64,000 bases of DNA from Pseudomonas aeruginosa PAO1 (GCF_000006765.1 NC_002516.2), one strand, 5' to 3'; positions 28,728 to 55,237 are shown, numbered from the stretch's first letter. Made by a program: numbers and translations. The notes: generated by a model from the letters alone, not told the origin.

Positions 28728-28861
28728 GCGGCTCCAGGGGCTTTTCGTCTTTGCCGCCATTTCCCGGCAATGTGCGCTTGGCGGATCATCCAGGTTGGGT
28801 ATCATGCGTCGCCATTCCCATCCACCGCCGACGGAAGTCAGGCTTTGCCTGCGTGAGCCCA

Positions 28862-30085
28862 ATGGACGATCTCTCCCCCGATTCCGCCTTGCCGCCTGCC
28901 GGCAGCGCCCAGGACAACGACGCGCCGCGCCAGTTGGTGGTCTGCATCGACGGAACCTCGAACCGCTTCGGCGACCAGCCGACCAACGTGGTGCGCCTGT
29001 ACCGCTCGCTGTCGCGCGATCCGCGCAGGGTGCTGGCCTACTACGACCAGGGCGTCGGCACCTTCGGCCTGAAGGAAACCCTGTTCGAGTGGCAGAAGTT
29101 TCCCTCGCGGATCGCCGGCCTGGCCTTCGGCTGGGGGCTCAAGCGCAACGTCGAGGGCGCCTATCGCTTCCTCGCCGAGCACTACCGGCCCGGCGACCAG
29201 ATATTCCTCTTCGGCTTTTCCCGCGGGGCCTACGCGGTGCGCGTGCTGGCCGCGATGCTGCGCGCGGTGGGCCTGATCGATGCGCACCAGCCGCACCTCT
29301 TCGACTACGCCTGGACCCTGCTCACCACCCGCATGCCGCCCCGCGACGAAGACAAGCGGGCCGGCACGCGTCGCCGCGGACCGGACTTCGGCCTGCTGGG
29401 ACGCTTCCGCAAGGTCTTCGGCCGGCAGGTGAAGGTGCACTTCCTCGGCCTGTTCGACACCGTGACCTCGGTGGGCTGGGTCTACGACCCGCTGACCGTG
29501 CCGTATTCCTCGAACAACGAAATGGTCGACGTGGTCCGCCAGGCCCTGGCCATCGACGAATGCCGCTGCTTCTTCCGGCAGAACCTCTGGTTCGGCGAGA
29601 AGGACCGCAAGTCCGACGTGTTGCAGGTGTGGTTCCCCGGCATGCACTCCGATGTCGGCGGTGGCTATGCGCCGAAGGACTCGCGGCTGGCTCTGGTGGC
29701 CTTTACCTGGATGCTCGGCGAGGCGCTGGAGGCCGGCCTGCATGTCGACCCGGCGCGCAGCCGCGACCAGTTGCGCGCACGTTCGAAGCAGGGCCCGGAC
29801 CCGACCGCGCCGATCCTGCCGGTGATGACCCGGCCCTGGCGCCTGGCCGAGTGGCTGCCGCTGCTGGTCTGGGACCGCCGCAGCGGCAACCGCGCCTGGC
29901 GCTGGTCGCGTGGCCGGCCGCGCTCGCGGCCGCTGGAACCGGTCGGGCAGGAAACCCGGGTCAAGCTGCACCGTTCGGTGCAGCGGCGGCTGGACGAATG
30001 CCCCGACTACCGGCCGTGCAACCTGCCAGCGCTGGAACGCTGCGACCTCATCGACGATTCGCCGTTGCTTGACGGCTACCGCTAG
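28862..30085 (+). CDS. DUF2235 (Tle1-like alpha/beta hydrolase, phospholipase-type) protein, 407 aa
   Basis: Motifs CIDGTSN, YYDQGVGT, GFSRG (GxSxG), FLGLFDTV and WFPGMHSDVGGG. Confidence 0.87.
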   Translation: MDDLSPDSALPPAGSAQDNDAPRQLVVCIDGTSNRFGDQPTNVVRLYRSLSRDPRRVLAYYDQGVGTFGLKETLFEWQKFPSRIAGLAFGWGLKRNVEGAYRFLAEHYRPGDQIFLFGFSRGAYAVRVLAAMLRAVGLIDAHQPHLFDYAWTLLTTRMPPRDEDKRAGTRRRGPDFGLLGRFRKVFGRQVKVHFLGLFDTVTSVGWVYDPLTVPYSSNNEMVDVVRQALAIDECRCFFRQNLWFGEKDRKSDVLQVWFPGMHSDVGGGYAPKDSRLALVAFTWMLGEALEAGLHVDPARSRDQLRARSKQGPDPTAPILPVMTRPWRLAEWLPLLVWDRRSGNRAWRWSRGRPRSRPLEPVGQETRVKLHRSVQRRLDECPDYRPCNLPALERCDLIDDSPLLDGYR

Positions 30086-31082: not shown

Positions 31083-32977
31083 GCGTTGTCTCCTTCGTCT
31101 ACCCGCACTTCGCGGAACATGCCCATCTCCATGTGGAACAGCAGGTGGCAGTGGTAGGCCCAGCGCCCCAGGGCGTCGGCGGTGACCCGGTAGCTGCGGC
31201 GGGTGCCCGGCGGCATGTCGATGGTGTGCTTGCGCACCAGGAAGTTGCCTTGCTCGTCCTCCAGGTCGCTCCACATGCCATGCAGGTGGATCGGGTGGGT
31301 CATCATGGTGTCGTTGACCAGGACGATCCGCAGGCGCTCGCCGTAGGTCAGGCGCAGCGGCTCGGCGTCGGAGAACTTGATGCCGTCGAAGGACCAGGCG
31401 AACTTCTCCATGTGCCCGGTCAGGTGCAGCTCGATGGTGCGCCCCGGCTCGCGGCCGTCCGGGTCGGCGAAGCGGCTGCGCAGGTCGGCGTAGGTCAGCA
31501 CCCGCCGCCCGTTGTCGCGCAGGCCGAGGCCGGGGTCGGCGAGCTTCGGTGTCGGCGTCATGGTCTGCATGTCGACCAGCGGGTTGCCGTCCTCCGAAGC
31601 CGGATGGGACTGCATCGGCATGGCGCCCATGCCCATCCTGGAATGGTCCATGCCGTTCATGTCCATGCCGGCCATCTTGGAGTGGTCCATGCCGTTCATG
31701 TCCATGCCGGCCATCTTGGAGTGGTCCATGCCGCTCATGTCCATGCCGGCCATCTTGGAGTGGTCCATGCCGTTCACGTCCATGCCCGACATCTTCGAAT
31801 GGTCCATCTCGCTGGCGGGCCTCGTCGCCGCGCCATGCCCCATGGCGCCGTGGTCCATGCCGCCCATGCCCATGTCGTCCATGCCGATCAGCGGGCGCGG
31901 ATCGGGCGTCGGCACCGGCGCGCTAAGCCCTTCGGCCAGCGCCAGGGTGCCGCGGGCGTAGCCGCTGCGGTCCATGGACTGGGCGAAGAGGGTATAGGCG
32001 CGCTCGCCGCCCGGCTCGACGATCACGTCGTAGGTCTCGGCCACGGCGATGCGCAACTCGTCGACGCTGACCGGCTCGACGTGCTGTCCGTCGGCGGCCA
32101 CCACGGTCATCTTCAGGCCGGGAATGCGGACGTCGAAATAGCTCATTGCCGAGGCGTTGACGAAGCGCAGGCGGAGCTTTTCGCCGGGGCGGAACAGGCC
32201 GGTCCAGTTGCCGTCCGGCGGCTGTCCGTTGAGCAGGTAGGTATAGGTGTAGCCGCTGACGTCGGCGAGATCGGTGGGACTCATCTTCATCTCGGCCCAC
32301 ATCTTGCGGTCGGCCAGGGTCGCGGCCCAGCCGTTGGCGCTGACGTCGTCGATGAAGTCGCCGACGGTGCGCTTGTGGAAGTTGTAGTAGTCGGACTGCT
32401 TCTTCAGCTTGGCGAGGATGCGCTGCGGCTTCTCGTCCGACCAGTCGCTGAGCAGCACCACGTAGTCGCGGTCGTAGCTGAACGGTTCCGGCTCGCGGGC
32501 GTCGATCACCAGGGCGCCGTAGACCCCGGCCTGCTCCTGTAGCCCCGAGTGGCTGTGGTACCAGTAGGTGCCGTTCTGCCGGACCTTGAAGCGGTATTCG
32601 TAGAGACCGCCGGGAGCGATGCCCTCGAAGCTGAGGCCCGGCACGCCATCCATGTTGGCCGGCAGGATGATGCCGTGCCAGTGGATCGAGGTGTCCTCGG
32701 CGAGGCGGTTGCGCACCCGCAGGGTCACGTTGTCGCCTTCGCGCCAGCGCAGGGTCGGGCCGGGCAGCGAACCGTTGATGGTCATGGCGGCGGCCGGCGA
32801 GCCGCTGAGGTTCACCGGGGTCTCGCCGATGAACAGGTCGAAACTGTCGCCGGCGAGCAGGTTCTGCTGGCCCGGCCCGGCCAGGGCCCAGGCCGGGGCG
32901 CGCCAGAGACCCAGTCCGCCGAGCAGACCGGTGGCGGCGAGGCCTTTGACGAAGGTGCGTCGCGAAGTTCTGTGCAT
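31079..32977 (-). CDS. pcoA: Periplasmic multicopper oxidase, 632 aa
   Basis: Tat signal SRRTFVK and four copper motifs HWHG, WYHSH, HPIHLHG and HCHLLFH. Confidence 0.96.
31641..31807. repeat. 39-bp in-frame tandem repeat (about 4.3 copies) in pcoA encoding [13 protein letters not shown]
   Basis: TGGTCCAT recurs at 31644, 31683, 31722, 31761 and 31800, exactly 39 bp apart. Confidence 0.92.
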
Positions 32978-33108
32978 CCGCTGGTTTCCACGCAGGTGGC
33001 AGGACGGACTGCGCGAGCCTGCGCAGCCGGGAAGTCGCGGCCCCGCCAGGGCGGTGCGGCGATGCGGACACCCTAGCGGCGCGCGCCTGTCGGCAAGCTG
33101 TGGGGAAG

Positions 33109-33124
33109 ATTACAGTGCTGTCAG
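33109..33124 (-). promoter_or_regulatory. CopR/CusR-type copper box upstream of pcoA
   Basis: Minus strand CTGACAGCACTGTAAT resembles the cop box (TGACA-N4-TGTAAT). It is about 130 bp upstream of pcoA. Confidence 0.72.
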
Positions 33125-33125
33125 C

Positions 33126-33764
33126 TCAGCGCGGCGGGTTCACCAGGTGGCGGTCGAAACCGCGCGCCACCAGGCGTTCCCAGGCGTCCATGACCTGCGC
33201 CGGGATCGGGCAGGCGACCTGGAAGCCCAGCGCCGGGTAACGCATGATGCGGTCAAGGTCGCCGACCATCTCGTCGATCACCCCGAGTACGCCGACCAGG
33301 TTCGAGATGCCGTCGGGAAATGCGTAGTCGGGCGCATCCACGTGTCCCTCCAGACCCGGCCAGCGGACCGGCAGGGTCAGCGCCACGCGGCGGATCGAGT
33401 TGGGCTTGGTGACGAAGGTCGCGCGGCGCAGGTCGGGGAACAGCTCGCGGGCGAAGGCGATGTTCTCGGCGAAGTTGGTCGCCCGCGGCTCGATCACGAT
33501 GAGGCTGTCGCTTACCCCGCGTGCCCTGGCGTGGCGGGCGAACAGCTCGGCTTCCGGCTCGACCCAGAGATGGCGCGTCCAGTGCCCGGTGTTGCCGGTG
33601 AACAGCAGGCGTTCGGCGAGGCCGCGTTCGAGCAGTTCGCAGGCGTGGTCGCAGACCCGCAGGTCGTAGGAGCCGCACACCACCAGCAGTTCGCAGGGCA
33701 CATGGCAGCGGCCCTGGCCGAGGAAGTCCCAGAGCAGCCGGGCATCTTGCAGGGTCGGGCTCAT
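33126..33764 (-). CDS. YdcF/DUF218 (SanA/ElyC-like) protein, 212 aa
   Basis: Motifs LLFTGNTG, EPEAELFA, IEPRATNFAENI and VTKPNSIRR. The start overlaps the HAD gene stop. Confidence 0.82.
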   Translation of the reverse strand: MSPTLQDARLLWDFLGQGRCHVPCELLVVCGSYDLRVCDHACELLERGLAERLLFTGNTGHWTRHLWVEPEAELFARHARARGVSDSLIVIEPRATNFAENIAFARELFPDLRRATFVTKPNSIRRVALTLPVRWPGLEGHVDAPDYAFPDGISNLVGVLGVIDEMVGDLDRIMRYPALGFQVACPIPAQVMDAWERLVARGFDRHLVNPPR

Positions 33765-34465
33765 GGGACGCCAACGCTCCTCTCGCTGCCGGTCGTGGCG
33801 GGGTGCCGATGCTGGCAGTACAGCCGGTCGTCTTCGCGGACGATCCGTAGCTCGCGGAAATCCCGGACCGACCAGCGCGCGCCGGCGGCGAGCAGGCCGC
33901 TCTCCTCGCCGATCGCCACGCAGGTCGCGCCGGCGGCACAGGCGGCCTGCACGCCGCTGAGGGAGTCTTCGAACACCAGGCAGCGCGACGGTGCCACGCC
34001 GAGCCTGGCCGCGGCCAGGCGATAGCCATCCGGAGCCGGCTTGCCGTGGACCACGTCGTCGCGGCTGACCAGGGTGCGGAACGCCGCCTGCAGGTCGTGC
34101 TGGCGCAGCACGTGGTCGATGCGTGCCGGCCAACTGCTGGTGACCAGCGCCAAGGGCACGTCCAGCCAACGCAGCTGGCGGATCACCGCGGCGACGCCGG
34201 GCAGCAGGGGACAGTCGGCGCCTTCCTCCAGCGCATCGACCCGTTGCTTGAGGATCCGCCGGCGCTCCATCGGCAGGTGGCCGAACAGATAGTCCAGGGT
34301 GTAGCCGCCCGGGCGACCGTGCACGTGGTCGCGCAGGCAGTCCGGGCCGAGCGCCACGCCCTGTTCGCCGGCGACCCGGCTCCAGGCCGCGGCGATGGCT
34401 TCGCGGGAGCTGATCAGGACGCCGTCCATGTCAAACAGAACGGCTGAAAACGCTAGTCGATGCAT
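33761..34465 (-). CDS. HAD-superfamily phosphatase (beta-PGM/sugar-phosphatase-like)
   Basis: Motifs FDMDGVL (DxD), LVTSS, GKPAPDGY and VFEDSLSGV. Confidence 0.9.
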   Translation of the reverse strand: MHRLAFSAVLFDMDGVLISSREAIAAAWSRVAGEQGVALGPDCLRDHVHGRPGGYTLDYLFGHLPMERRRILKQRVDALEEGADCPLLPGVAAVIRQLRWLDVPLALVTSSWPARIDHVLRQHDLQAAFRTLVSRDDVVHGKPAPDGYRLAAARLGVAPSRCLVFEDSLSGVQAACAAGATCVAIGEESGLLAAGARWSVRDFRELRIVREDDRLYCQHRHPATTGSERSVGVP

Positions 34466-35594
34466 CTCGGGCACTCTGTAGGGCAAGCCAGACCAGGACC
34501 GCGCCGCCGAGGGCGAACAGCGCCATGATCAGATAGGACCACTGCGGCAGGCCTTCGTACAGCCAGCCGGCGGCCGGACTGGCGAGGCCCATGGGCAGCG
34601 CTACCGCCAGAGAGTAGTAGATCCCCTGGGTCAGTACCCGCGCGCTTTCCGGCGCGTGGTCGCGGATGTAACGCATCACCGCGGCGTGGTAGGCGGCGAA
34701 GCTGAGGGCGTGCAGGCACTGGCCGAGGAGGATCGCGGCGAGGTGTTCGCTGCCGGCCAGCAGGCCCCAGCGCAGCGCCGCGCAAAGGCTGGAGAAGAGC
34801 ATCACCTGGAGCGCCGGGTGGCGGTCCAGGATGCGGTTGGAGACGGCGAAGAAGCTGATCTCGGCGATCACCGCCAGGCCCCAGAAGGCGCCGACCGAGA
34901 ACGACGAGTAGCCCAGCGTCTGCCAGCCCAGCGAGGCGGTGGTGAAGTACAGCGAGTGGCTCAGTTGGATCATTCCCGCCGCGGCGATGGCCAGCAGCAG
35001 GGGGCGTTGCCGGAGGATCCCGCGCAGGTCGGGACGGCGCCTGGCGCCCGGCAGCGGCGAGTCCGGACGGCGCAGGCTGCGGCGACGGAGGAACAGGCAG
35101 GCCAGCGCGGTGAGCAGCATCGTCAGGCCGACCAGGGCGGGCACCAGTTGCTGGCCGAAACGACCGAGCAGCAGGCCGCCCAGGGTCGCGGTGAGGATGA
35201 AGGCCAGCGAACCGACCGCGCGTACCCGCCCGTAGTTCTGCAGGGCGGCCTTGTCGCGCTTGAGCAGGTAGGACTCGGTGAGCGGCAGCACGCTGGTCCA
35301 GAACGCGCCGTAGAGCACGCTCAGGGCGATGAACAGCGGCAGGCCCTCGGCCAGCTGGAACAGCAGGGCGCAGGCGCCGGCCAGGGCCGCCAGCAGGGTC
35401 GCCAGGCGCAACTGGTCGATGCGCCAGTCGGCCACGTAGGTCAGCGCCACCCCGGCGATCACCTGCGGCCAGTAGGCCGCGGCGATCAACAGGCCGATCT
35501 GGCTGGCGCCGAAGCCCAGGCTGGCCAGCCAGGTCGGCCAGAACGGATAGATCAGCCCCTCGGCGGCGAAGTAGCCGGAAAAGATCAGGTACAT
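34431..35594 (-). CDS. MFS_1-like transporter (HcaT / nucleoside:H+ symporter-like), 387 aa
   Basis: 12 TMS, with YPFWPTWL, YGRVRAVGSLAF, AEISFF and LHALSFAAYH. Confidence 0.85.
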   Translation of the reverse strand: MYLIFSGYFAAEGLIYPFWPTWLASLGFGASQIGLLIAAAYWPQVIAGVALTYVADWRIDQLRLATLLAALAGACALLFQLAEGLPLFIALSVLYGAFWTSVLPLTESYLLKRDKAALQNYGRVRAVGSLAFILTATLGGLLLGRFGQQLVPALVGLTMLLTALACLFLRRRSLRRPDSPLPGARRRPDLRGILRQRPLLLAIAAAGMIQLSHSLYFTTASLGWQTLGYSSFSVGAFWGLAVIAEISFFAVSNRILDRHPALQVMLFSSLCAALRWGLLAGSEHLAAILLGQCLHALSFAAYHAAVMRYIRDHAPESARVLTQGIYYSLAVALPMGLASPAAGWLYEGLPQWSYLIMALFALGGAVLVWLALQSARDASTSVFSRSV

Positions 35595-35637
35595 GCCGGT
35601 TCCCGCGTCGCCGTGCCGGTTCGCTGCGGTTTGCGCC

Positions 35638-37362
35638 TCACTCGAAGCGCGCCCTGGCGAAGGCGTTCTCGCCCTTGCGCCAGACCAGCAGGGACTCGCC
35701 CAGCACCACCAGGTCGACCATGCCGTCCTCCAGCGCGCCGAGGGCGTCCTGCGGGGCGCAGACGATCGGTTCCTCGTGGCGGTTGAAGGAGGTGTTGATC
35801 AGCGCCGGCTGGCCGCTGCGGGCATGCCAGGCATGCAGCAGGGCGTGCATGAACGGATCGGCCTGCGGCCGGATGATCTGTGGCCGCGCGGTGCCGTCGA
35901 CATGCACCACCGCCGGGCAGCGCGCGCGGAAATCCGCATGGCAGTCGTAGGTCATGGTCATGTAGTCGGCCGCCACCTGGTGTTCACGCCAGCCAACGTA
36001 GCAAGCCTCGGCGTGTTCTACCGCGGTGACCGGGGCGAATGGCATGAACTCGGTGCGTTCCATGCGCTGGTTGAGCCAGTCGTTGGCGCTGGCATCGCCG
36101 GGATGGTAGACGATGCTGCGGTTGCACAAGGCGCGCGGACCGAACTCCATGCGGCCCTTGAACATGCCCAGCACCTGGTTTTCCCGCAGCGCTTCGACCA
36201 GCGTCTCGATCAGGTTGGCTGGCCGGCTGTAGGCCAGCTGCGGGTACTGGCTGGCGATCAGCTCGGCATTCTGCGCGGCGCTGCGCGCGTCCGGCCCGAG
36301 GGCCATGCTCGGCGCCGGGAAGCGCGTACCGTTCTCGCGATAGGCCACCGCCACCGCCGCGGCCAGGGCCAGGCCGCCGTCGCCCATGCAGGGCAGCACG
36401 TAGACATCGCGGACCCCGGGGATCTCGCGCAGGCGCTGGTTCAGCTTGACGTTGCCGAACACCCCGCCGGCCAGGCACAGGTTGGCACAACCGGTGCGCG
36501 CCACGTGCTCCCGGGCGATGGCCACCAGCAGGTCTTCGGAGTGCCGTTGCGCGGCGGCGGCGACATCCGCCGGGCGTTCCGCCGCGCAGCGTTGCAGCAG
36601 CGGATCGCTGTAGCCGTCGTAGGAGGGCAGGTACAGTTCGCCGCAGCGGGCGCGCAGGCGGCCGTTCTCCAGGCGGATCATGTCGTTCATCAGCGGCAGC
36701 AGCTTTTCCGCGTCGCCGAACGCCGCCAGGCCGGTGATCTTGCCTTCGTGGCGGTTCGGCTTGAAGCCGAGCAGGCGGGTGATGCGCCCGTAGAAGTAGC
36801 CCAGGCTGTCGACGCTGGTCTCGCGTTGCAGGACCGTCTCGCCGCCGTCGGCGCGGTAGTGGGTGACGGTGAGCGACTGGAAGTCGCCGCGGCCGTCGCA
36901 GGTGAGGGTCAGCGCCTCGTCGAACGGCGAGCAGACGAATGCGCCGAGGGCGTGGCATTCGTGATGGTCGATGTACTCGACCTTGCCGCGCAGGCCGTTG
37001 GCGCGGACGAAGGCATCGAATTCGCCGCGCTTGGCCTTGTCGTTGGCCATCTCGTCGGCGATCCGCTTGCGCAGGTGCGGCAGGCCCTCGGGACGCTCGC
37101 GGGCTTCCTCGAGGACCCGGTCCAGGTAGAGGTCGAGGTGCCGCCCGGCGTCGAACCCGGCGTTCCAGCCGTAGGCGATGCGGTCGATGTCGGCCAGGTC
37201 GATGCCGGCCTCGCCGAGCACATAGTCGATGGAGCGGCTCGGCCAGGCCTTGTGGTCCTTCTGGCGGGTGAAGCGCTCCTCGCTGGCGGCGGCGACGATC
37301 CCGCCGTCGCGCACCAGGCAGGCGCCGGCCAGGTCGTTGTTGGTGATCCCGAGAATGATCAT
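35638..37362 (-). CDS. O-carbamoyltransferase (NodU/CmcH/TobZ family), 574 aa
   Basis: Kae1-like HHECHA, TCDGRGD, LAGGVFGNVKLN and GDGG, plus YrdC-like RMEFGPRALCNRS, FMPFAP, HVDGTARPQ and INTSFNRHEEP. Confidence 0.94.
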   Translation of the reverse strand: MIILGITNNDLAGACLVRDGGIVAAASEERFTRQKDHKAWPSRSIDYVLGEAGIDLADIDRIAYGWNAGFDAGRHLDLYLDRVLEEARERPEGLPHLRKRIADEMANDKAKRGEFDAFVRANGLRGKVEYIDHHECHALGAFVCSPFDEALTLTCDGRGDFQSLTVTHYRADGGETVLQRETSVDSLGYFYGRITRLLGFKPNRHEGKITGLAAFGDAEKLLPLMNDMIRLENGRLRARCGELYLPSYDGYSDPLLQRCAAERPADVAAAAQRHSEDLLVAIAREHVARTGCANLCLAGGVFGNVKLNQRLREIPGVRDVYVLPCMGDGGLALAAAVAVAYRENGTRFPAPSMALGPDARSAAQNAELIASQYPQLAYSRPANLIETLVEALRENQVLGMFKGRMEFGPRALCNRSIVYHPGDASANDWLNQRMERTEFMPFAPVTAVEHAEACYVGWREHQVAADYMTMTYDCHADFRARCPAVVHVDGTARPQIIRPQADPFMHALLHAWHARSGQPALINTSFNRHEEPIVCAPQDALGALEDGMVDLVVLGESLLVWRKGENAFARARFE

Positions 37363-37433
37363 GCGGTGTCCTCTTGCGCGAACGGGTGGGGGGCGAGAGG
37401 CGTAATAGGTTGCATGGCACCGGGAGCCCAACA

Positions 37434-37488
37434 ACCTGCCAGATCTGGTCGCCTGCGAAATCTGGCAGGGCTACCGGATCTGGTAGCT
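37434..37488. promoter_or_regulatory. Three overlapping las/rhl (lux-type) boxes
   Basis: ACCTGCCAGATCTGGTCGCC (37434-53), GCCTGCGAAATCTGGCAGGG (37451-70) and GGCTACCGGATCTGGTAGCT (37469-88). The last two fit CT-N12-AG exactly. Confidence 0.75.
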
Positions 37489-37541
37489 GGACAGCCGTCG
37501 ACGGGCTTGCCGGCCATACCGGCCGGGCGCCCGCGCCGGCA

Positions 37542-40184
37542 TCAGAAGCTGTAGCTGAGGCGGCCGAACAGGATGCGCCCGTAGGGATCGGTGTAGCGCG
37601 GGTCGTAGCCGCTCTGGAAGGTGTAGGTCTGGTTGCTGAACGGCGGTTCGCGGTCGAACAGGTTCTTCACCCCGAGGGTCAGCCCCAGCGCGTGGCTGAG
37701 GCGGTAGCTGCCGGCCAGGTCCCAGAGGTTCCACGAGCCGACCTTGCCGTGGCTGGCGCGGTCGTAGTCGTTGTAGCCGCTGGTGTAGCGGTTGCTCAGG
37801 GTGGCCTGCCAGGCGTCGCGGCTCCAGGTGGCGTTGGCGACGTGCTTCCAGCGGGCGATCACGCCGACGCCCTGGAAGTCGCCGACGTTGTCCAGGTACT
37901 GGCCGCCGATCTGCTGCTGGAAGTCGTAGCGGGACACGTAGGTGCCTTGCAGGTCGAGCCCGAACTGCCCGTAGCGGCTGGCCGGGAAACGATAATCGAG
38001 GCTCAGGTCGACGCCGCTGGTCTTCACTTTGCCGAGGTTGGCCAGTCCGGTGACGACGTGATCGATCGAGCCGTCGGCCTTGCGCACGATGCGTCCGGCG
38101 TAGGCCTGCGGGTCGGCGAAGATCGCCGCTTCGGGAAACTCGGCGATCTGGTTGGCGATCCTGATCCACCAGAAGTCCAGGCCGACGGAAAGGTCGCGCA
38201 GCGGCTGGTAGACCAGGCCCAGGGTAACGTTGCGCGCGGTTTCCGGTCGCAGGTCGGTATTGCCGCCGGTGGCGTTGTAGAACTGCTGGGCGCAGTCGCG
38301 GTTGGCGATGCCGCCCTGGCTCGGCTGGCCGCCGGCGCACAGGCGCGGGTCGTCGTAGTTGGCGCTGGTATAGGTGGTGAAGGTCGGGTTGTACAGTTCG
38401 TACAGCGACGGCGCACGGAAACCTTCGCTGTAGGCGCCGCGCAGGACCAACTGGCGGAACGGCTGGAAGCGGAACGAATATTTCGGGTTGCTGGTGCTGC
38501 CGAAGTCGCTGTACTTGTCGTGGCGGATCGCCGCGCTGAGTTCCAGGCTGTCCAGCACCGGCACGTTGAGTTCGGCGTACTGCGCCTTCAGGTTGCGCTC
38601 GCCGCTGACCGTGGCGGCGGGATCGACGCCGAGGCTCTGCACGTTGCCGGCGAAGTCCTGGATGTCCTGGTGGAACGCTTCCTTGCGGAACTCGCCGCCC
38701 AGCGCCAGGGCCGCCGGCCCGGCGCCGAACCAGTCGCCGATCTCCCGGCTGGCGCGGGCGTCCAGGCCCTTGACGCGGCCGACCGAGGTACGGAAGTCGC
38801 CGCTCAGGGCATGGCTGCCGAGGTAGGCGAGGCCGGCGTCGGTCTGCGGCCCGAACGGGTTCAGCGTCCCGTTGGCGATGCCGAGGGCGGCGGCGCGATC
38901 ATCGACGTAGCCGCTGTGGATATGGTCGACCACCTTGTTCTGGTTGTACGAGGCGCCGATATCGTAGTCCCAGCCGGCGAACTGGCCGTCGAAGCCGAGC
39001 AGCAGGCGCTGGCCGGTGTTCTGCGAGGATTGCAGGCGCGGCCCGAGCACGCTCTGTCGCCAGTTGACCTCCACCGGCCGGCTCGGGTCGAGGACGAAGC
39101 CGCCGGGTCCGGGAGTGATGCCGTTGCCGGGATAGAAGGCGGTGCCGGGATCGATCTGCAGGCCGGTGAGGGTCCCTGGGCCGACCTGGGTAGCGTTGTC
39201 GCTGCGCGACCAGAAGTACTCCAGGCTGACGTTGTGCTCGTCGGCCAGCTTGCCGGTGGCGCGGCTGAACACCGAGGTCTTCTCGGTTTCCGGCACCAGG
39301 TCGAGGTAGCGCCACAGGCTCTGCCGGCAGATGCCGTTGCGCGGAATCAGGTCGGCGCCCTTGCAACCGCCGGCGGCCAGCGGATTGCTGGCGTTGGCGC
39401 CCTGGCTCCAGTTGCCGGGGAAGGCGGTGCCGGAGCTGTAGTCGAGGCCGCGTCCCGGCTGGTAGTTGTAGGTGTAGCCGCGGTCCTTGGCGCCGAGGCG
39501 CTCCTGCTTGTCGTAGTTGGCCACCGCGAAGACATTGAAGCGATCCTCCTCCAGCTCGCCGAAGCCCCAGCTAGCGCTGACGTTGCGCTGGTTGCCGCCG
39601 CCGTCGTGGGTGGGGGAGGCGTAGCCGCTGTCGAAGCGGCCTTCGTTCAGGCTCTTGCGGGTGATGAAGTTGATCACCCCGCCGATGGCATCGGTGCCGT
39701 ACAGCGCGGAGGCGCCGTCGCGCAGCACCTCGACCCGGTCGATGGCGGCGAAGGGAATGGTGTTGAGATCCACCGCGGAGCCGTCGATGGCATTGTTCGC
39801 CAGGCGCCGGCCGTTGAGCAGCACCAGGGTCTTGTTCGCGCCGATTCCGCGCAGGTCGGCGAACGAGGCGCCGCCGGTGGCGCTGCCGACCGAGCGACTG
39901 GAGTTGTATACGCCCTGGTTGCCGGAAAGCCGGCCGATCAGTTCCTCGGTGCTGGTCACGCCCTGTTGGCGCAGCTCCTCGGCGCGCAGGACGCTGATCG
40001 GCACCGCGGTTTCCGCATCGACCCGGCGGATCGCGCTGCCGGTCACCTCGATTCGTTGCAACTGGACCGTGGGCGGGTCGACAGGCGCCTGTTCCTCCGC
40101 CGCGGCGGCGCTGCCGGGAGCGAGCTGCAGGGCCAGCAGCAGGGCGGCGCCCAGCGGCGCGTCGGTGTGGAGCGATCGGTGCAT
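37542..40184 (-). CDS. TonB-dependent receptor, 880 aa, no STN domain
   Basis: Signal peptide, TonB box IEVTGSAI, plug [17 protein letters not shown] and a C-terminal YSF. Confidence 0.92.
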
Positions 40185-47916: not shown

Positions 47917-49578
47917 TTATTCCAGTTCGGCTGCGCTCTCTTCCTGGCGCTTCAACCCGGTATGACTGATGGCGTGCAGAGCGGTATTGAACTGTACGGT
48001 CTCGTTGAAACCCTTGACGATCTGCGCCAGCTTCTCGCGGGCGCTTTCCAGCTTCTTGAAGCGCTCGCCGAGTTCCAGGCTGCGCTGCTGGACGCTGGCT
48101 TCGCGCTTTTCCAGTTCGGCCTGGCGCAGGTTCTGCTGGCTGCGCAACTCTTCGAGGCGTTCCTGCTCGATCTGCAGTACCTCGGCTCGCCGCGCGCTGC
48201 TGCGCTCGCGGGCTTCGACGCTTTCCGCGAGTTGTTGCAGGGCCGCGCTGCGCTCGGCGAGGAGACGGTTGCTCTGCTCGGTTTCCCGCTCCAGCGCCTG
48301 GCGGTCGTCCTGCAGGCGCTTGTGCCACTGCCGGAGCTGCTTTTCCTTTTCCTGCAATTGCCGCTCCTTCTCGTGCAGTTGCGTCTGGAGCGACTCCAGC
48401 GACTCCTGCTGCTTGAGCGCTTCCTGCTTCTGCTGGCTCAGTTGCTGGGCCATGCCGGCGAGGTCGGCCAGCGTGCCCTGCACGTCCTGTAGCAGATGCT
48501 CGGTATCGTTGCCGATATCGAGCGCGGTATCCGTATCCACGTGGGCTTCATCCTCGGGTTGGCGAATGACGGCGGCGGCCTGGGTGGGCGCCTCTCTGGC
48601 GTTGGCCCCGCCCTCGGCGCCGGCCAGGCGTGCGGGCGGCACCCGGAGGCGCAGCGACAGGCTGGGGACCCTGGCCGATACCGGTTCCGGCGCGGGTGCG
48701 GCGAGGGGGGAGGGGCTCGGGGGCATGGAGGATTCCTCGGCGGCGTCTGGAGACGGAAGGTTGGCGCTGCCCGTGGCGTCGGCGGCGTGCAGCGCGGGGT
48801 GGAGCATCTGCGCCAGGTCGGCAAGCTCCTCGCGAAGATGACTGGCGTTGTCGACGAAGGCGCCGATGGCCTCGGCATCCGCTACCTTGGCGGACTGCTC
48901 CGCTTTCGCCGCGAACTCGGCTGGCGCCCCACCCTCGGGCGCTGCCGTTTCCGCCTCCGGCCGCGGCTCGGGCTCGACGCATCCGGCCTCGGTGACGGTT
49001 TCGTCTTCCGCCGCCTCGGGCTCGTCGATGGGCTCCGCCGGCCCGTCCGTGGTCTCGTCCGCATCGTCTTCGGCGAGGACATCGGGAGCGGCGTCTTCGA
49101 AAAGGGCCTCCTGGACGAGCGGCGGGACTTCCGCGCAGGGTTCCTCGCCATCCAGGGCGGGGCCGTAGCCATGGGGGGACTCGAAGGTGACGAGCTTCAT
49201 CACCCATTCGCGTTCGAGCACCAGGGAGCGGTGTTCTTCCCGCCGCGAGGGGGCGATGGCCGCGTCCTGCAGGTCGATGAGGTGGTAGGCGAGATCGCTG
49301 GTCCGGCGGTTGCCGGTGGTGGCTTCGCGGACCAGTTGGCGGAACACCTGGATGGCCGCCTCGCAGGCCTCGTCGGTGTCGAGACGGCCCAGGCGGAAGC
49401 CGTCGTCGGTCTTGAACAGGGAGGCGATGTAGACGCGCGAGTCGTTTTCGTCGACCTGTTCGTTGAGGCTGTAGGCGATGAAGTTGCGGTCGCTGGCGGG
49501 AATGGCGAAACCACACAACAAGGCCGCATTCAGTTCCGTCTGCTCGGCAGTTTCCACACTGATGGTTCGAAGAAGCAT
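47917..49578 (-). CDS. Hypothetical 553-aa protein: globular N-domain, acidic Pro/Ala-rich linker, long C-terminal coiled coil
   Basis: Composition of the translation; Q/E/K/R heptads from about residue 385 to 545. Confidence 0.8.
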   Translation of the reverse strand: MLLRTISVETAEQTELNAALLCGFAIPASDRNFIAYSLNEQVDENDSRVYIASLFKTDDGFRLGRLDTDEACEAAIQVFRQLVREATTGNRRTSDLAYHLIDLQDAAIAPSRREEHRSLVLEREWVMKLVTFESPHGYGPALDGEEPCAEVPPLVQEALFEDAAPDVLAEDDADETTDGPAEPIDEPEAAEDETVTEAGCVEPEPRPEAETAAPEGGAPAEFAAKAEQSAKVADAEAIGAFVDNASHLREELADLAQMLHPALHAADATGSANLPSPDAAEESSMPPSPSPLAAPAPEPVSARVPSLSLRLRVPPARLAGAEGGANAREAPTQAAAVIRQPEDEAHVDTDTALDIGNDTEHLLQDVQGTLADLAGMAQQLSQQKQEALKQQESLESLQTQLHEKERQLQEKEKQLRQWHKRLQDDRQALERETEQSNRLLAERSAALQQLAESVEARERSSARRAEVLQIEQERLEELRSQQNLRQAELEKREASVQQRSLELGERFKKLESAREKLAQIVKGFNETVQFNTALHAISHTGLKRQEESAAELE

Positions 49579-51418: not shown

Positions 51419-53323
51419 TCAGAGGGTCTTCATGTACTCGACCAGGGCGCGGCGCTGCTGCTCGTTGAACTGCGCGTTGCCGTAGTCGTGGCCGCCATTG
51501 GCGTTGCCCGGCTTGCCGCTGTCGAAGAGGAAGCGGTTGGCGCCGCCGGCATCGGTGATGTAGCCGACGTTGACCGGGTCGAACTCGACGCTGCCGGTAT
51601 AGAAGGTCCGCGGCCGCAGGTCCGGCGGCAGCAGCAGGTCGTAGAGGGTCGCCACCGAGCCGTTGTGCAGGTAGGGCGGGCTGGCCCAGATACCGTTCAG
51701 CGGGCGCGCCTTGTAGGCCATCAGGTCGCTGGTCATCGCCAGGCACTGCTCCAGGCGCCGGGCCTTGTCGCTGTCGGCCGCGACGTTTTCGGCCAGGAGC
51801 AGGGCGCCTGGCGCGTCCGCGGCGGTCGCTTCGGCGCTGTCGGCGTCGGGGCTGTCCGGCACCGGACTGATCAGCGGCGGCAACTGCCCGTCGAAGATGC
51901 CCAGGGCGGCGGTCTGGAAGGCACCCAGGGCGACGCTCAGGCCGCGCGCGGCCAGGGCCTGGACCACCACTTCCTGGAGCACGTCCACCGCATAGGCCTG
52001 CTTGCCGTAGAAACCGCGCTGGCCGGTGCCGACGAAGGACAGGTAGGGCTTGCCGCGCACGTAGCCGGTCTTCAGTTGGGCGATGCTGTTGCAGGCGGTC
52101 CACGGGTCGGTGCCGATCGGCGCGACCTCGCCGCGCGCCTGCAGGTGGGTGAGCACGGTCTTCACCGGGGTCCGCAGGTCGTTGCGGTCCAGCGGCGTGT
52201 GGCAGCTGGAGCAATGTTGCCGGTACAGCTCGCGGCCCTCGGCGACCCTGGTCGGCTCCGGGGCGCCGAACAGCTGGTTCGGCCAGGCCGGCGGCTTCAG
52301 TTGGCCGAGCTGGTCTTCGATGCGGATCAGGTTGTCGACGTTGATGCTCGACGGGTAGCCGATGTGCAGCGCCGACTGGATCGGGCTGAGCACCTTGACG
52401 TCGGCGAATACCCCGACCGCCTCGCCGGCGTTGCGCGCCAGGGCGCCGACGTCGAACTTGCGGTTGTCGATGTCGACCACGTTGATGTGGTTCGGGTTGA
52501 AGCCGGTCCACTGCACGCGGTCCAGCTGCGGTACGTTCCACAGGAACGGATAGCTCACGGGGGCGTCCTCGGCGCCGTAGATCTGCTCGTCGGCGTGCAG
52601 TTCGTAGCCCACCGAGTTGAAGATCGAACCGATGGCGTCCAGGCGGCCCGGGCCGAACTCGGGATCGTGCGGCAGGTTGAAGTGCGAGCCGTCGCGCAGG
52701 CGCACGATGGTGGCGTCCAGGGCTGCCTGCAGGCGCGCCTTGTTGGCGTCGTTGTAGCCGCTGACCAGGCCGTCGGCGCCGAGCACCTTGCGGGCGAAGC
52801 GCTCGAACTTGGCGGTGTCGGCGCGGGTGCTCTGCAGGGCGCCGAGGATCTCCAGCTGGAAGCCGGCGAGGTCGCCCATGGTCTGCCCGCCGTAGACGGT
52901 CAACTGGGTGCCCTGGTAGCTGATGTGCGAGGTGTGGCACATGCTGCAGGTCGGTCCGACCCAGGGTTCCCTGGAGCCCTGCAGGGCTTTCCAGCGCAGC
53001 TTGGTGAAGGTCAGGTCGCTGTCGTCGCTGCGGTCGACCGCGTAGCCCTGCACCACCTTCACGCTGGAACCGCCGAGGGTGTGCGGGACATAGCCGTACT
53101 GGCGGATCAGCGCATCGGACATCAGCGGTTCTTCGCTGGCGCGCTGCTCCAGCGCCACCAGCCAGGCCAGCGGCAGCATCCGCGAGCCCTGGCCGGCTTC
53201 CAGCCAGGCGGTCTTCTGGGTCTGGTTCCAGCCCTGGTCGAGGTCGACGCCGCTGTCGTCGGCGAATGCCGGGGCACCGGCGAGGACGGAAAGGATGGCA
53301 AGGCTGAGTCGCGATAGGGTCAT
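51419..53323 (-). CDS. Di-heme cytochrome c peroxidase/RoxA-like enzyme; oleate 10S-dioxygenase by synteny, 634 aa
   Basis: Signal peptide, CSMCH and CSSCH heme motifs, and YKARPLNGIWASPPYLHNGSV. Confidence 0.85.
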   Translation of the reverse strand: MTLSRLSLAILSVLAGAPAFADDSGVDLDQGWNQTQKTAWLEAGQGSRMLPLAWLVALEQRASEEPLMSDALIRQYGYVPHTLGGSSVKVVQGYAVDRSDDSDLTFTKLRWKALQGSREPWVGPTCSMCHTSHISYQGTQLTVYGGQTMGDLAGFQLEILGALQSTRADTAKFERFARKVLGADGLVSGYNDANKARLQAALDATIVRLRDGSHFNLPHDPEFGPGRLDAIGSIFNSVGYELHADEQIYGAEDAPVSYPFLWNVPQLDRVQWTGFNPNHINVVDIDNRKFDVGALARNAGEAVGVFADVKVLSPIQSALHIGYPSSINVDNLIRIEDQLGQLKPPAWPNQLFGAPEPTRVAEGRELYRQHCSSCHTPLDRNDLRTPVKTVLTHLQARGEVAPIGTDPWTACNSIAQLKTGYVRGKPYLSFVGTGQRGFYGKQAYAVDVLQEVVVQALAARGLSVALGAFQTAALGIFDGQLPPLISPVPDSPDADSAEATAADAPGALLLAENVAADSDKARRLEQCLAMTSDLMAYKARPLNGIWASPPYLHNGSVATLYDLLLPPDLRPRTFYTGSVEFDPVNVGYITDAGGANRFLFDSGKPGNANGGHDYGNAQFNEQQRRALVEYMKTL

Positions 53324-53362
53324 CGGGCGGTTCTCTCTATTGGGCATGTGGGCGGGGCCGGC

Positions 53363-55237
53363 TCACAGGGTCTTGAGGTATTCGAGCAACGCCAGGCGCT
53401 GGCTTTCGTCGTACTCGCGGGCGAAGTCGTGGCCGGCGTTGGAGTTGCCTTCCAGGTGGGTGTCGAAGAGGAAGGCGTTGTCCGGGCCGGGCGCGGTGAG
53501 GTAGCCGACCCGGCTCGGATCGAACTCGTGGCTGCCGGTGTAGAAGGTGGCCGGCCGTTGCTCCTGGGGCAGCAGCAGGTCGTACAGCGACGGCACCGAA
53601 CCGTTGTGCAGGTAGGGTGCGGTGGCCCAGATGCCGTTCAGCGGGCGAGCGATGTAGCCGAGGAATGGATGCTCGGTATTCAGGCAGTAGTCCTTGCGCG
53701 CACTCTTGTCGGTGGGGACTTCGCCGGCGGCGAGGCTCTGCGCCTGGCTGTCGGCAGGGGCGGCGCCGGCCAGCAGCAATTGTCCGGCGGGCACCGCTTG
53801 CAGGCTGTCGGAGCCGGGCAGGGTCTGCTGCCCGGTGACGATGGCGTGGATGATCTCGGCGATGCCGTCGGCCAGCTGGCCTTTCTTGCCGAGCATGATC
53901 TGGAACACCTCGGGGACCTGCATGTCGGCGATCTTCGAAGTCCGCCCGACGATGCCGACGCCGCTGGGGGTGCCGAGGGACGGTCGGAACAGGCCGAAGT
54001 AGTTGCCGCTGGGGCTGCTGAAGGTGAAGGTGTTGCAGGCCATCCACGGGTCGGTGCCGATCGGCGCGTCGTCGCCATGGGCCTTCAGGCGCACCTGGCG
54101 GACCTTGATCGGGGTTTGCAGGTCGTCGCGGCCGATGCTCGCATGGCAGGCCGCGCAGTTCTCCTCGTAGAGGCGCTTGCCCTGGGCCAGCCTGGCGCTG
54201 TCCGGGGCGCCGAACAGCTGGCTCGGCCAGGCCGGCGCCTTGAGCTTGTGGATCAGGCCCTCGACACGGGTCAGGTTGTCCACGCGGATGCTCGATATAT
54301 AGCCCTCCAGGCCGGACAGCGGATGGCTGACCACGTCGCCGTAGTCGCCCTGGACCACGCCGATGTCGCCGGCCAGGTAGCCGAGGTCGAAGACCTGGCC
54401 GTTGAGGTCGAGGACCTTGACGTTGGGCACGAATCCGCTGGATTGCAGCTTGTCCATCTGCAACGTGTGCCACAGTGCCGGGAAGCTGGTCGGCGCGTCG
54501 GTCGGGTTCGCTTGCAGATGGCGGGCGCCGGAGTTGATTGCCGCGCGGTTGAGTGACTGGCCGGTGGCGTCGAGGCGCCCCGGGCCGGGTTGCAGGTCGG
54601 TCGCGGACATGCTCAGCAGGGTGTCGATCAGCGCCGCGCGTTTGACCAGGGCGGCCTTCAGCAGCTCGCGGTTGGCCGGGCTGTCCTCGCTGCCGAGGAC
54701 GTTGCCGGCGAAGCGCGCGAACTTGTCGCCGTCGTCGCTGGTGCGGCGCAGCGCGGCGAGCACTTCGTCGAAGATCGCCTGGACGTTGGCCAGGGTGGCG
54801 CCGGCGTCGACGGTCAGTTCGCTGCCACGGTAACTGATGTCGGTGGAGTGGCAGCCGGCGCAATTCAGCCCGACCCAGGGTTCGCTGGACGACTGGCGGG
54901 CTTTCCAGCGCAGGCGGGTGTCGGAGAACTGGCTGTCGTCCTGCTGGTCGAGGGCGAAGCCGCGCGGCAGGCGCAGTTCGCCGCCTTGCCAGTTGCGCAG
55001 GGGAAAGCCGAGGCGCCGGGCGTTGTCTTCGGAGAACAGGCGCTCCTCGCTGTCCGGACGCTCCAGCGCCTGGGCCCAGGCCAGCGGCAGCAGCCGCGAA
55101 CCGAGCGAGGCGTCGTACCAGGAGGCGCGTTGCTCGGCGTTCCAGCCTTGCTCGAGCTGGATTTCGGTGGCGACGGCAGGGCTGCCGGCGGCGGCCAGTG
55201 CGGCGGCCAGCAGGACCCGCGAAAAGGTCGGATGCAT
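53363..55237 (-). CDS. Di-heme paralogue; 7,10-hydroperoxide diol synthase by synteny, 624 aa
   Basis: Signal peptide, CAGCH and CAACH heme motifs, and ARPLNGIWATAPYLHNGSV. It is a tandem paralogue of the downstream gene. Confidence 0.85.
   Translation of the reverse strand: MHPTFSRVLLAAALAAAGSPAVATEIQLEQGWNAEQRASWYDASLGSRLLPLAWAQALERPDSEERLFSEDNARRLGFPLRNWQGGELRLPRGFALDQQDDSQFSDTRLRWKARQSSSEPWVGLNCAGCHSTDISYRGSELTVDAGATLANVQAIFDEVLAALRRTSDDGDKFARFAGNVLGSEDSPANRELLKAALVKRAALIDTLLSMSATDLQPGPGRLDATGQSLNRAAINSGARHLQANPTDAPTSFPALWHTLQMDKLQSSGFVPNVKVLDLNGQVFDLGYLAGDIGVVQGDYGDVVSHPLSGLEGYISSIRVDNLTRVEGLIHKLKAPAWPSQLFGAPDSARLAQGKRLYEENCAACHASIGRDDLQTPIKVRQVRLKAHGDDAPIGTDPWMACNTFTFSSPSGNYFGLFRPSLGTPSGVGIVGRTSKIADMQVPEVFQIMLGKKGQLADGIAEIIHAIVTGQQTLPGSDSLQAVPAGQLLLAGAAPADSQAQSLAAGEVPTDKSARKDYCLNTEHPFLGYIARPLNGIWATAPYLHNGSVPSLYDLLLPQEQRPATFYTGSHEFDPSRVGYLTAPGPDNAFLFDTHLEGNSNAGHDFAREYDESQRLALLEYLKTL

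Follow-up and report, generated by a model that had tools for sequence, protein, structure and literature searches.

The closest described relatives of the system reported here are the O-carbamoyltransferases TobZ (tobramycin), VtdB (venturicidin), GdmN (geldanamycin/ansamitocin) and NovN (novobiocin), which belong to large biosynthetic clusters and decorate a finished scaffold. Their presumed chemistry starts from carbamoyl phosphate and ATP and proceeds through carbamoyl-AMP to O-carbamoyl transfer. NodU and NolO, the Nod-factor enzymes of rhizobia, are of the same family and act on chito-oligosaccharides in nod operons; the acceptor of NodU is a hydroxyl of N-acetylglucosamine (GlcNAc). In this study, we analysed a 64,000-nt stretch of Pseudomonas aeruginosa PAO1 DNA (GCF_000006765.1, NC_002516.2; hereafter the window), in which four co-directional minus-strand genes (33126-37362) encode a carbamoyltransferase (CT) of this family, an MFS_1_like carrier, a HAD-IA hydrolase and a DUF218 protein. 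We found that the CT and HAD genes, together with a carrier gene, form a unit that recurs in distant bacteria, and comparison of these units tentatively suggests that the product is an O-carbamoylated, hexosamine-type sugar.

The locus is PA2069-PA2066 of P. aeruginosa (the PA14_37745 operon), because the RhlR motif, the order of neighbouring genes and the mass of the DUF218 protein match the published ones: PA2070 lies between fusA2 and the carbamoyl transferase gene PA2069, and the computed mass of 23.9 kDa is that published for PA2066. The CT shares 99% identity with a protein cluster of P. aeruginosa that has 1494 member sequences. An initial annotation of the window had presented the locus as a new orphan cluster, but PA2069-PA2066 is a well-known operon that RhlR targets directly and that belongs to the core lasR regulon. 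No assignment of a product was found in the literature searched. The families of the parts, the locus and its regulation were already known, and what is new is the comparative cassette hypothesis: we found no earlier description in that literature of the CT, HAD and carrier genes as a unit, of its spread across phyla or of its GlcNAc-type carriers.

PA2069 shares with TobZ, VtdB, GdmN and NovN the fold and the two-domain architecture (Kae1-like plus YrdC-like), and presumably the chemistry. However, it is only 28-29% identical to them, has Asn in place of His14 of TobZ, and is accompanied by a phosphatase and a carrier only. Rhizobial plasmid CTs are about 32-35% identical to PA2069. The GlcNAc hydroxyl chemistry of NodU and NolO is that proposed here, although their substrates are not monomers released by a phosphatase. 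P. aeruginosa has a second CT of the same family, WapO (PA5005), whose operon with PIG-L and glycosyltransferase genes resembles the contexts of the nearest CTs outside the cassette. WapO is encoded in an operon for assembly of the lipopolysaccharide (LPS) core, whereas PA2069 has no glycan-assembly partners and is quorum-regulated.

Several pathways pair a synthase with a dedicated HAD phosphatase (trehalose OtsA/OtsB, sucrose SPS/SPP, kanosamine NtdB), and Escherichia coli has a sugar-phosphate stress trio of YigL (HAD), SetA (MFS efflux) and a LacA-type capping acetyltransferase. The cassette may resemble these systems in its logic, in that a pathway phosphatase would free the sugar, a transferase would cap a hydroxyl and an MFS protein would export the product. 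To our knowledge, none of them uses carbamoyl groups and none is packaged as a single mobile cassette. PA2066 shares the DUF218 domain with the Upr-like proteins (SanA, which is UprA, UprB and UprC) and with E. coli YdcF, and like YdcF it is cytoplasmic; it is, however, only about 20% identical to YdcF, and a sequence search of the PDB gave nothing significant.

The CT and HAD cassette and its carriers

Genomes were scanned with an alignment of CT homologues, which yielded 80 loci, and tblastn and profile searches with the proteins of the window followed; the cassette contexts are a sample and not a census. In a simple neighbour-joining tree of 85 CTs, the 22 that were counted as HAD-linked all fell into one clade, the count including Xenorhabdus, whose HAD gene is split by an insertion sequence (IS). 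The clade contains Pseudomonas, Vreelandella, Chromobacterium, Sorangium, Streptomyces/Kitasatospora, Saccharothrix, Cedecea, Vibrio, Aliivibrio, Xenorhabdus and Tenacibaculum, and the cassette of CT and HAD is present in at least four phyla, Pseudomonadota, Myxococcota, Actinomycetota and Bacteroidota.

The order CT-MFS-HAD-DUF218 is kept in six other Pseudomonas species, at identities to the window of 69-72% (CT), 57-63% (MFS), 53-54% (HAD) and 62-67% (DUF218), and Vreelandella has the same four genes. A search for the four-gene module in other taxa, proposed when the locus was first annotated, is therefore positive in these two genera, whereas elsewhere the core is CT and HAD, the carrier varies and DUF218 is mostly absent. 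Sorangium and Chromobacterium have CT-MFS-HAD, Kitasatospora and Streptomyces CT-HAD-MFS, and Tenacibaculum HAD-MFS-CT. A CT-HAD pair is found in Aliivibrio and, with a divergent LysR gene, in Vibrio and Cedecea (the two LysR proteins are 36% identical); Dongshaea has a convergent CT/HAD pair adjoining a LysR gene, and in Xenorhabdus the order is LysR, CT, the IS-interrupted HAD and a 391-aa enzyme IIC (EIIC) of the phosphotransferase system (PTS). The flanks differ in every lineage (a type I restriction system, an integrative conjugative element, nitrite reductase, housekeeping genes), and no scaffold synthase was found among the flanking genes of the cassette lineages. The nearest CTs outside the cassette, among those examined, are in glycan clusters with glycosyltransferase, NeuB, PIG-L and methyltransferase genes. 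The conserved unit is CT and HAD plus a carrier, not four genes, and DUF218 joins it in some Pseudomonadota only.

Individual loci show how the cassette is placed. In Vreelandella zhaodongensis (L087, 8000-14750), it is flanked by a 129-aa Rieske_2 (nirD-like) gene on one side and a 36-aa Rieske_2 fragment on the other, a layout that looks like insertion into or beside a nirD-like gene. In Xenorhabdus sp. TH1 (L086, 8993-17053), it lies amid integrative-conjugative-element genes, with one IS in the HAD gene. Among PLSDB plasmids only distant CTs were found (at most 35% identity, mostly rhizobial), which leaves plasmid carriage of the cassette unsupported, and complete genomes of E. coli gave zero cassette matches.

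Three types of carrier occupy the carrier slot. Type A is the MFS_1_like carrier; its member in the operon, PA2068, matches Pfam MFS_1_like (PF12832) at 166.8 bits (cut-off 25.2). Type B comprises distantly TsgA-like MFS proteins, which share 43% identity between Kitasatospora and Tenacibaculum; similarity to type A was not detectable. The third type is a PTS EIIC without EIIB and occurs in two cassettes, that of Xenorhabdus and one (L122) found by a metagenome scan with a DUF218 alignment, where the order is nagB-II, nagA, CT, a 410-aa EIIC, HAD and DUF218. On the GlcNAc-specific IIBC model, the L122 protein scored 471.7 bits (profile positions 5-389 of 475), its open reading frame (ORF) stopping just past the inter-domain linker; the Xenorhabdus protein scored 519.4 bits (positions 1-383) and ends at the linker. 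The two EIICs are only 36% identical. A complete nag operon also adjoins the Chromobacterium cassette, and since its NagA is only 34% identical to that of L122, the nag associations of the two cassettes are independent. That three unrelated carriers fill one slot argues that the job of the cassette includes transport of the same small solute across the membrane, and a GlcNAc-like sugar is indicated by the two EIIB-less GlcNAc-type channels together with the two independent nag neighbourhoods. EIIB is the domain that phosphorylates the sugar at O-6, the position carbamoylated by NodU; loss of EIIB would be expected if O-6 were already blocked by a carbamoyl group.

The CT and the HAD of the operon are intact. 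In PA2069, an N-terminal Kae1/ASKHA-like domain (Carbam_trans_N, 146.7 bits, profile 2-346 of 346) and a C-terminal YrdC-like domain (Carbam_trans_C, 184.8 bits, 2-168 of 170) are in one chain, both well above cut-offs. Its matches by sequence in the PDB are VtdB, NovN, GdmN and TobZ (E 1e-51 to 1e-62), and its AF2 model (pLDDT 87.6) aligns with the same four at TMq 0.75-0.84. H133, H137 and D328 are identical in all 85 homologues aligned, and H134 and D156 in 84 of them; from knowledge of TobZ and Kae1, we take the conserved H/H/D/D positions to be metal ligands. Across the 85 homologues 68 positions are near-universal, and 13 are specific to the cassette clade. We infer that the CT carries out carbamoyl phosphate/ATP-dependent O-carbamoylation of a hydroxyl on a small molecule. 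Its best NCBIfam model is NodU (NF041651), at 118 bits against a cut-off of 1000; on this score an orthologue of NodU is ruled out, and PA2069 would be NodU-like in its working at best.

PA2067 matches HAD_2 (93.5 bits; cut-off 23.8) and HAD-SF-IA-v3 (TIGR01509, 79.6 bits; cut-off 29.4) and has all four HAD motifs (DMDG at residue 12, VTSS at 108, GKP at 141 and EDS at 166). The nearest named NCBIfam models are sugar and hexitol phosphatases, and the PDB neighbours are phospho-sugar and pseudouridine-5'-phosphate phosphatases, so PA2067 is an intact HAD phosphatase or mutase of the sugar-phosphate branch. It scored below the cut-offs of the beta-phosphoglucomutase-family model (TIGR02009, 110.7 against 153.35) and of the named sugar phosphatases HxpA (90.6 against 282) and HxpB (88.2 against 191), and by these scores it is related to those enzymes without an assignable substrate. 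Two candidates were rejected. Published over-production of PA2067 gave no relief of glycerol-3-phosphate stress, which speaks against glycerol-3-phosphate as the substrate, and O-carbamoyl-serine as the product had no support in the contexts or literature searched, the HAD being of the sugar-phosphate type.

PA2066 matches DUF218 at 48.6 bits (cut-off 27.6), the match ending at profile position 99 of 133. For its AF2 model (pLDDT 95.2), the sole significant fold match in the PDB is E. coli YdcF (3CA8; TMq 0.80, E 7.5e-11, Foldseek). Neither sequence nor model has an N-terminal hydrophobic segment, and the lack of a signal peptide or membrane anchor indicates a cytoplasmic protein. In the metagenome scan, a CT adjoins 22 of 80 DUF218 loci; seven of these are P. 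aeruginosa (95-100% identity; eight with one truncated contig included) and 14 others are 55-68% identical. DUF218 stands alone in at least 17 metagenome loci with at least 3 kb of upstream sequence. The orthologues, at 46-68% identity, have 39 invariant columns among 33 aligned sequences, and they sit in a different context in each of Aquitalea, Fluviispira, Niveibacterium, E. mendocina and Halomonas huangheensis. In Stigmatella aurantiaca (L088, 7282-9522), HAD (48% identity) and DUF218 are followed by a nucleotidyltransferase gene (NTP_transf_2/DUF4037), with no CT within 8 kb. A metagenome contig (L116, 4004-7636) carries CT, type A MFS and DUF218 without HAD, and an AraC-type regulator gene is next. 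Because the orthologues stand alone, the contexts differ, HAD and DUF218 are paired in Stigmatella and L116 lacks HAD, we conclude that DUF218 is an enzyme in its own right, which the cassette recruited in some Pseudomonadota.

In H. huangheensis (L091, 1-7639), the solitary DUF218 gene is 4 kb from a PAAR gene and two DUF6708 genes, from which an opposite-strand efflux operon separates it; this was the only neighbour resembling a type VI secretion system (T6SS) in the DUF218 contexts seen. According to a 2026 preprint, DUF218 proteins of the periplasm cleave C55-PP-GlcNAc/MurNAc carriers by hydrolysis of the sugar-diphosphate bond; the function of the cytoplasmic YdcF branch, where several residues of the Thr/His/Glu catalytic core are missing, is left undefined there. 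The periplasmic activity is a further pointer to amino-sugar chemistry, but no more than an indirect one.

Proposed chemistry and competing explanations

We propose that the core is a self-contained, horizontally travelling cassette made up of a TobZ/NodU-family CT, a dedicated HAD-IA phosphatase and a sugar-type inner-membrane carrier. HAD would strip the phosphate from a phosphorylated hexosamine-type sugar, for which GlcNAc-6-phosphate is the best guess; the CT would make carbamoyl-AMP from carbamoyl phosphate and ATP and carbamoylate a hydroxyl of the freed sugar; and the carrier would move the capped sugar across the membrane. Export is the likelier direction, because an imported, unphosphorylated compound would leave HAD without a role. 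Transfer to O-6, as by NodU, would explain the loss of EIIB in the PTS-type carriers. The order of HAD and CT could also be reversed, as in the synthase-plus-phosphatase pathways through trehalose-phosphate and sucrose-phosphate. In P. aeruginosa, the cassette has been put under RhlR/PqsE quorum control and has gained a cytoplasmic YdcF-type DUF218 protein. The product may serve as a signal, as an antimetabolite or as a relief valve for amino-sugar phosphate. The initial annotation had spoken of a sugar-like acceptor freed from a phosphate ester; this is supported, and the comparative data narrow it towards hexosamine. For the route from hexosamine phosphate through free sugar and O-carbamoyl sugar to transport, with a hexosamine-type acceptor, we estimate a probability of roughly 0.45. 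Further support comes from NodU, a GlcNAc O-carbamoyltransferase, as the top-scoring model for the CT despite a score far under its cut-off, from the glycan clusters that hold the nearest CTs outside the cassette, and from the kinship of HAD to sugar-phosphate phosphatases.

Several observations weigh against this proposal. Of about 15 cassette lineages, three supply the GlcNAc clue; in P. aeruginosa, the cassette lacks an EIIC carrier and has no nag genes next to it; and five cassette lineages have no linked carrier at all. The best NCBIfam model of the type A carrier is the 3-phenylpropionate transporter HcaT (216 bits; cut-off 259), with weaker matches to sugar-efflux, galactoside and nucleoside permeases, and its PDB match is the nucleoside transporter YegT (E 2.4e-7). 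The outward direction follows only from the reasoning about HAD, and HAD could be a mutase rather than a phosphatase. In the CT, Asn9 aligns with His14 of TobZ, the residue substituted in the H14N variant (3vex), so the transfer step may differ from that of TobZ. All 22 cassette CTs have Asn at this position, where the wider subfamily seldom has His; the H14N variant was crystallised with the carbamoyl-adenylate intermediate, and the Asn of the cassette is its natural equivalent. Whether the residue at His14 defines the family is uncertain. No mention of a carbamoylated GlcNAc monomer was found in the literature searched, and no metabolite of the operon is known.

A more specific form of the proposal is doubtful as a whole: a diffusible O-carbamoylated GlcNAc monomer, for example 6-O-carbamoyl-GlcNAc, would be released under RhlR/PqsE control, with the DUF218 protein feeding the pathway. 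Such a product would be the single-sugar counterpart of the carbamoylated end of the Nod factor. The cap would hide the sugar from phosphorylation by the PTS, and the compound might act as a signal or antimetabolite, or might withhold amino sugars of chitin or peptidoglycan from competitors. The cytoplasmic DUF218 protein would then cleave a diphosphate-linked GlcNAc donor, which would explain its toxicity on over-production.

The same three steps of dephosphorylation, O-carbamoylation and transport could serve another acceptor from central metabolism, such as a nucleoside, a polyol, a neutral hexose or a hydroxy amino acid. This would fit the similarity of the type A MFS to nucleoside:H+ symporter models and YegT and that of HAD to pseudouridine-5'-phosphatase and to hexitol and deoxyglucose-6-P phosphatases, as well as the nucleotidyltransferase gene adjoining the Stigmatella pair and the position of the Vibrio, Cedecea and Dongshaea cassettes near pgi, GH1 phospho-glucosidase and glpX/S6PP-like genes. 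We consider it unlikely, since the cassette EIICs scored 472-519 bits on the GlcNAc model against 323-341 bits on the next-best model, that for glucose, with the maltose and alpha-glucoside models also far lower, and since the data on glycerol-3-phosphate stress and O-carbamoylserine described above are negative. It is very unlikely that the operon is an uptake module in which the TonB-dependent receptor (TBDR) PA2070 and the MFS protein import a siderophore- or antibiotic-like cargo that the CT carbamoylates inside the cell. The TBDR gene is directly upstream on the same strand, and the type A, type B and EIIC families are mostly importers; however, the RhlR box and a 179-nt gap separate TBDR from CT, and the imported compound would be unphosphorylated, leaving the strictly co-inherited HAD without a role. 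Published reporters showed zero PA2070 promoter activity under the metal conditions tested, and its regulation has been linked to an ECF sigma factor. As a member of the cassette PA2070 was rejected, since the RhlR box is downstream of its stop codon and a TBDR accompanies no other cassette: tblastn detected none in the 80 CT loci, and the gene tables of the remaining cassette contexts contain none. Still less probable is that the CT, like WapO with the LPS core, carbamoylates a sugar of LPS or a surface polysaccharide. The glycan clusters around the nearest non-cassette CTs, the operon of WapO itself and the action of DUF218 relatives on lipid-linked glycans favour it, but no glycosyltransferase, flippase or polymerase gene is beside any cassette, the cassette carries a phosphatase of the soluble-sugar type and usually a small-solute carrier, and P. 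aeruginosa already has WapO for the LPS core.

Published work, which had been overlooked when the locus was first annotated, proposes a different function for PA2066: an antibacterial toxin loaded in Hcp2 and fired by the H2-T6SS, with PA2067 as its immunity protein; on this view, CT and MFS would share the operon but be unrelated to the toxin. An Hcp2 pull-down gave a 10-fold enrichment of PA2066, its co-purification with Hcp2-His was weak, and N-terminally tagged PA2066 reduced survival of E. coli by about 2 log (PMC8262886); later papers list it as an effector. The same study reported that the interaction with Hcp2 was lost on gel filtration and that C-terminally tagged PA2066 was non-toxic, so that the claim rests on the pull-down, the weak co-purification and the toxicity of one tagged form (PMC8262886). 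Like the Hcp-loaded effectors Tse1-Tse4, PA2066 is small, below the limit of the Hcp lumen, and has the published pull-down and E. coli toxicity in its favour. Unlike them, it has no adjacent immunity gene or nearby T6SS genes, is strongly conserved across phyla and has solitary orthologues in unrelated contexts. The orthologous HAD-DUF218 pair without CT in Stigmatella and the one solitary orthologue 4 kb from PAAR genes would suit a toxin, and the cleavage of C55-PP-sugar bonds, as carried out by DUF218 relatives, could be toxic in the cytoplasm. Against it, the window ORFs scanned include no hcp, vgrG or PAAR gene, and the 148 nt between the DUF218 stop codon and pcoA hold no immunity ORF. 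The solitary orthologues are in housekeeping-like contexts without HAD or a conserved partner, and in most lineages HAD is tied to CT and not to DUF218, most cassette HADs having no DUF218 and most DUF218 orthologues no HAD. The gene contexts thus give the Hcp2-toxin claim no support and do not refute it; we regard it as quite unlikely, and the hexosamine proposal remains our preferred one.

Quorum control and layout of the locus

Three lux-type dyads on the minus strand (37486-37471, 37468-37453 and 37451-37436) lie back to back upstream of the CT gene, 17-18 nt apart from centre to centre. The RhlR chromatin immunoprecipitation (ChIP-seq) motif printed for the 'PA14_37745 operon' (PMC10732425), GCCCTGCCAGATTTCGCAGGC (21 nt), has one exact match, at 37451-37471 on the minus strand, and zero matches in 100 shuffles. 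It is centred 98 nt upstream of the CT start codon, within the 179-nt gap before CT. The middle dyad is inside this published motif and the other two are outside it. A CT-N12-AG frame fits the first and middle dyads, with one mismatch in the third, and the first dyad resembles LasR-type boxes. According to published work, all four genes PA2069-PA2066 drop together on inhibition of quorum sensing and are within the core lasR regulon of clinical isolates; PA2069 is an RhlR target whose induction is boosted by PqsE, and a probe for the Pseudomonas quinolone signal (PQS) pulled down PA2069, only from quorum-proficient cells. The description of the locus as quorum-controlled is thus borne out by the motif, by ChIP and by co-regulation, and it is prior published knowledge rather than a result of this study. 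Palindromic lux-type dyads matching those of the window were found in none of the 330-nt regions upstream of 14 other cassettes, including that of Chromobacterium. Because these cassettes are without matching boxes, the quorum wiring is specific to P. aeruginosa and was acquired there.

The coordinates of the locus are given in Table 1. All four genes pass the Pfam cut-offs, which confirms the complete set described in the initial annotation. Its description of a tight operon with overlapping junctions is true of two of the three junctions: MFS and HAD overlap by 35 nt, and HAD and DUF218 share an ATGA start/stop overlap, whereas CT and MFS are 43 nt apart. The third-position GC of the four genes is 0.87-0.91, like that of neighbouring genes and typical of real genes, in a GC-rich window (0.62-0.71). 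Consensus scans of 32900-37700 found neither a sigma-70 promoter nor an intrinsic terminator; the boundaries of the operon therefore rest on spacing and on the published co-regulation.

Table 1. Features of the PA2069-PA2066 locus, in window coordinates
Feature	Position	Strand	Description
O-carbamoyltransferase (CT), PA2069	35638-37362	minus	574 aa, 63.4 kDa; Pfam Carbam_trans_N + Carbam_trans_C (PF02543 + PF16861)
MFS_1_like carrier, PA2068 (type A)	34431-35594	minus	387 aa; Pfam MFS_1_like
HAD-IA, beta-phosphoglucomutase-like phosphatase, PA2067	33761-34465	minus	234 aa; Pfam HAD_2 + Hydrolase
DUF218/YdcF-family protein, PA2066	33126-33764	minus	212 aa, 23.9 kDa; Pfam DUF218; accessory cassette member
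Promoter region, three 16-nt lux-type boxes	37436-37486	minus	upstream of CT
TonB-dependent receptor (TBDR), PA2070	37542-40184	minus	880 aa; Pfam Plug + TonB_dep_Rec_b-barrel; probably outside the cassette

The absence of a non-ribosomal peptide synthetase or polyketide synthase, noted earlier for this locus, was also found here: the only window ORF of at least 1000 aa is a TonB-dependent receptor, and there was no synthase among 25 neighbouring ORFs scanned. A role in anti-phage defence was rejected, a search with PADLOC having given zero matches for all four proteins. Elsewhere in the window, a plus-strand gene (28751-30085) encodes a 444-aa protein with a T6SS Tle1-like phospholipase domain (PF09994, 260 bits), 3 kb from the DUF218 gene and beyond pcoB and pcoA. 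On the minus strand, a 553-aa ORF (47917-49578) has gene-like codon bias (third-position GC of 0.83) and zero Pfam matches, and two tandem paralogous genes (51419-55237) encode RoxA-like cytochromes c of 642 and 624 aa.

Significance of the cassette

In a major opportunistic pathogen, PA2069 ranks among the genes that depend most strongly and reproducibly on RhlR/PqsE, and two decades of transcriptomics have left it without a function. The comparison replaces this blank in the annotation by a specific chemical hypothesis, one open to checking against data that already exist, and it puts in question the published filing of PA2066 as a T6SS effector. Beyond P. aeruginosa, it describes a scaffold-less type of biosynthetic cassette, present in at least four phyla, that standard cluster miners would not flag. 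If the product were indeed a diffusible carbamoyl-GlcNAc, it would represent a new class of small molecules under quorum control, the product of a minimal cassette that escapes cluster-mining tools.

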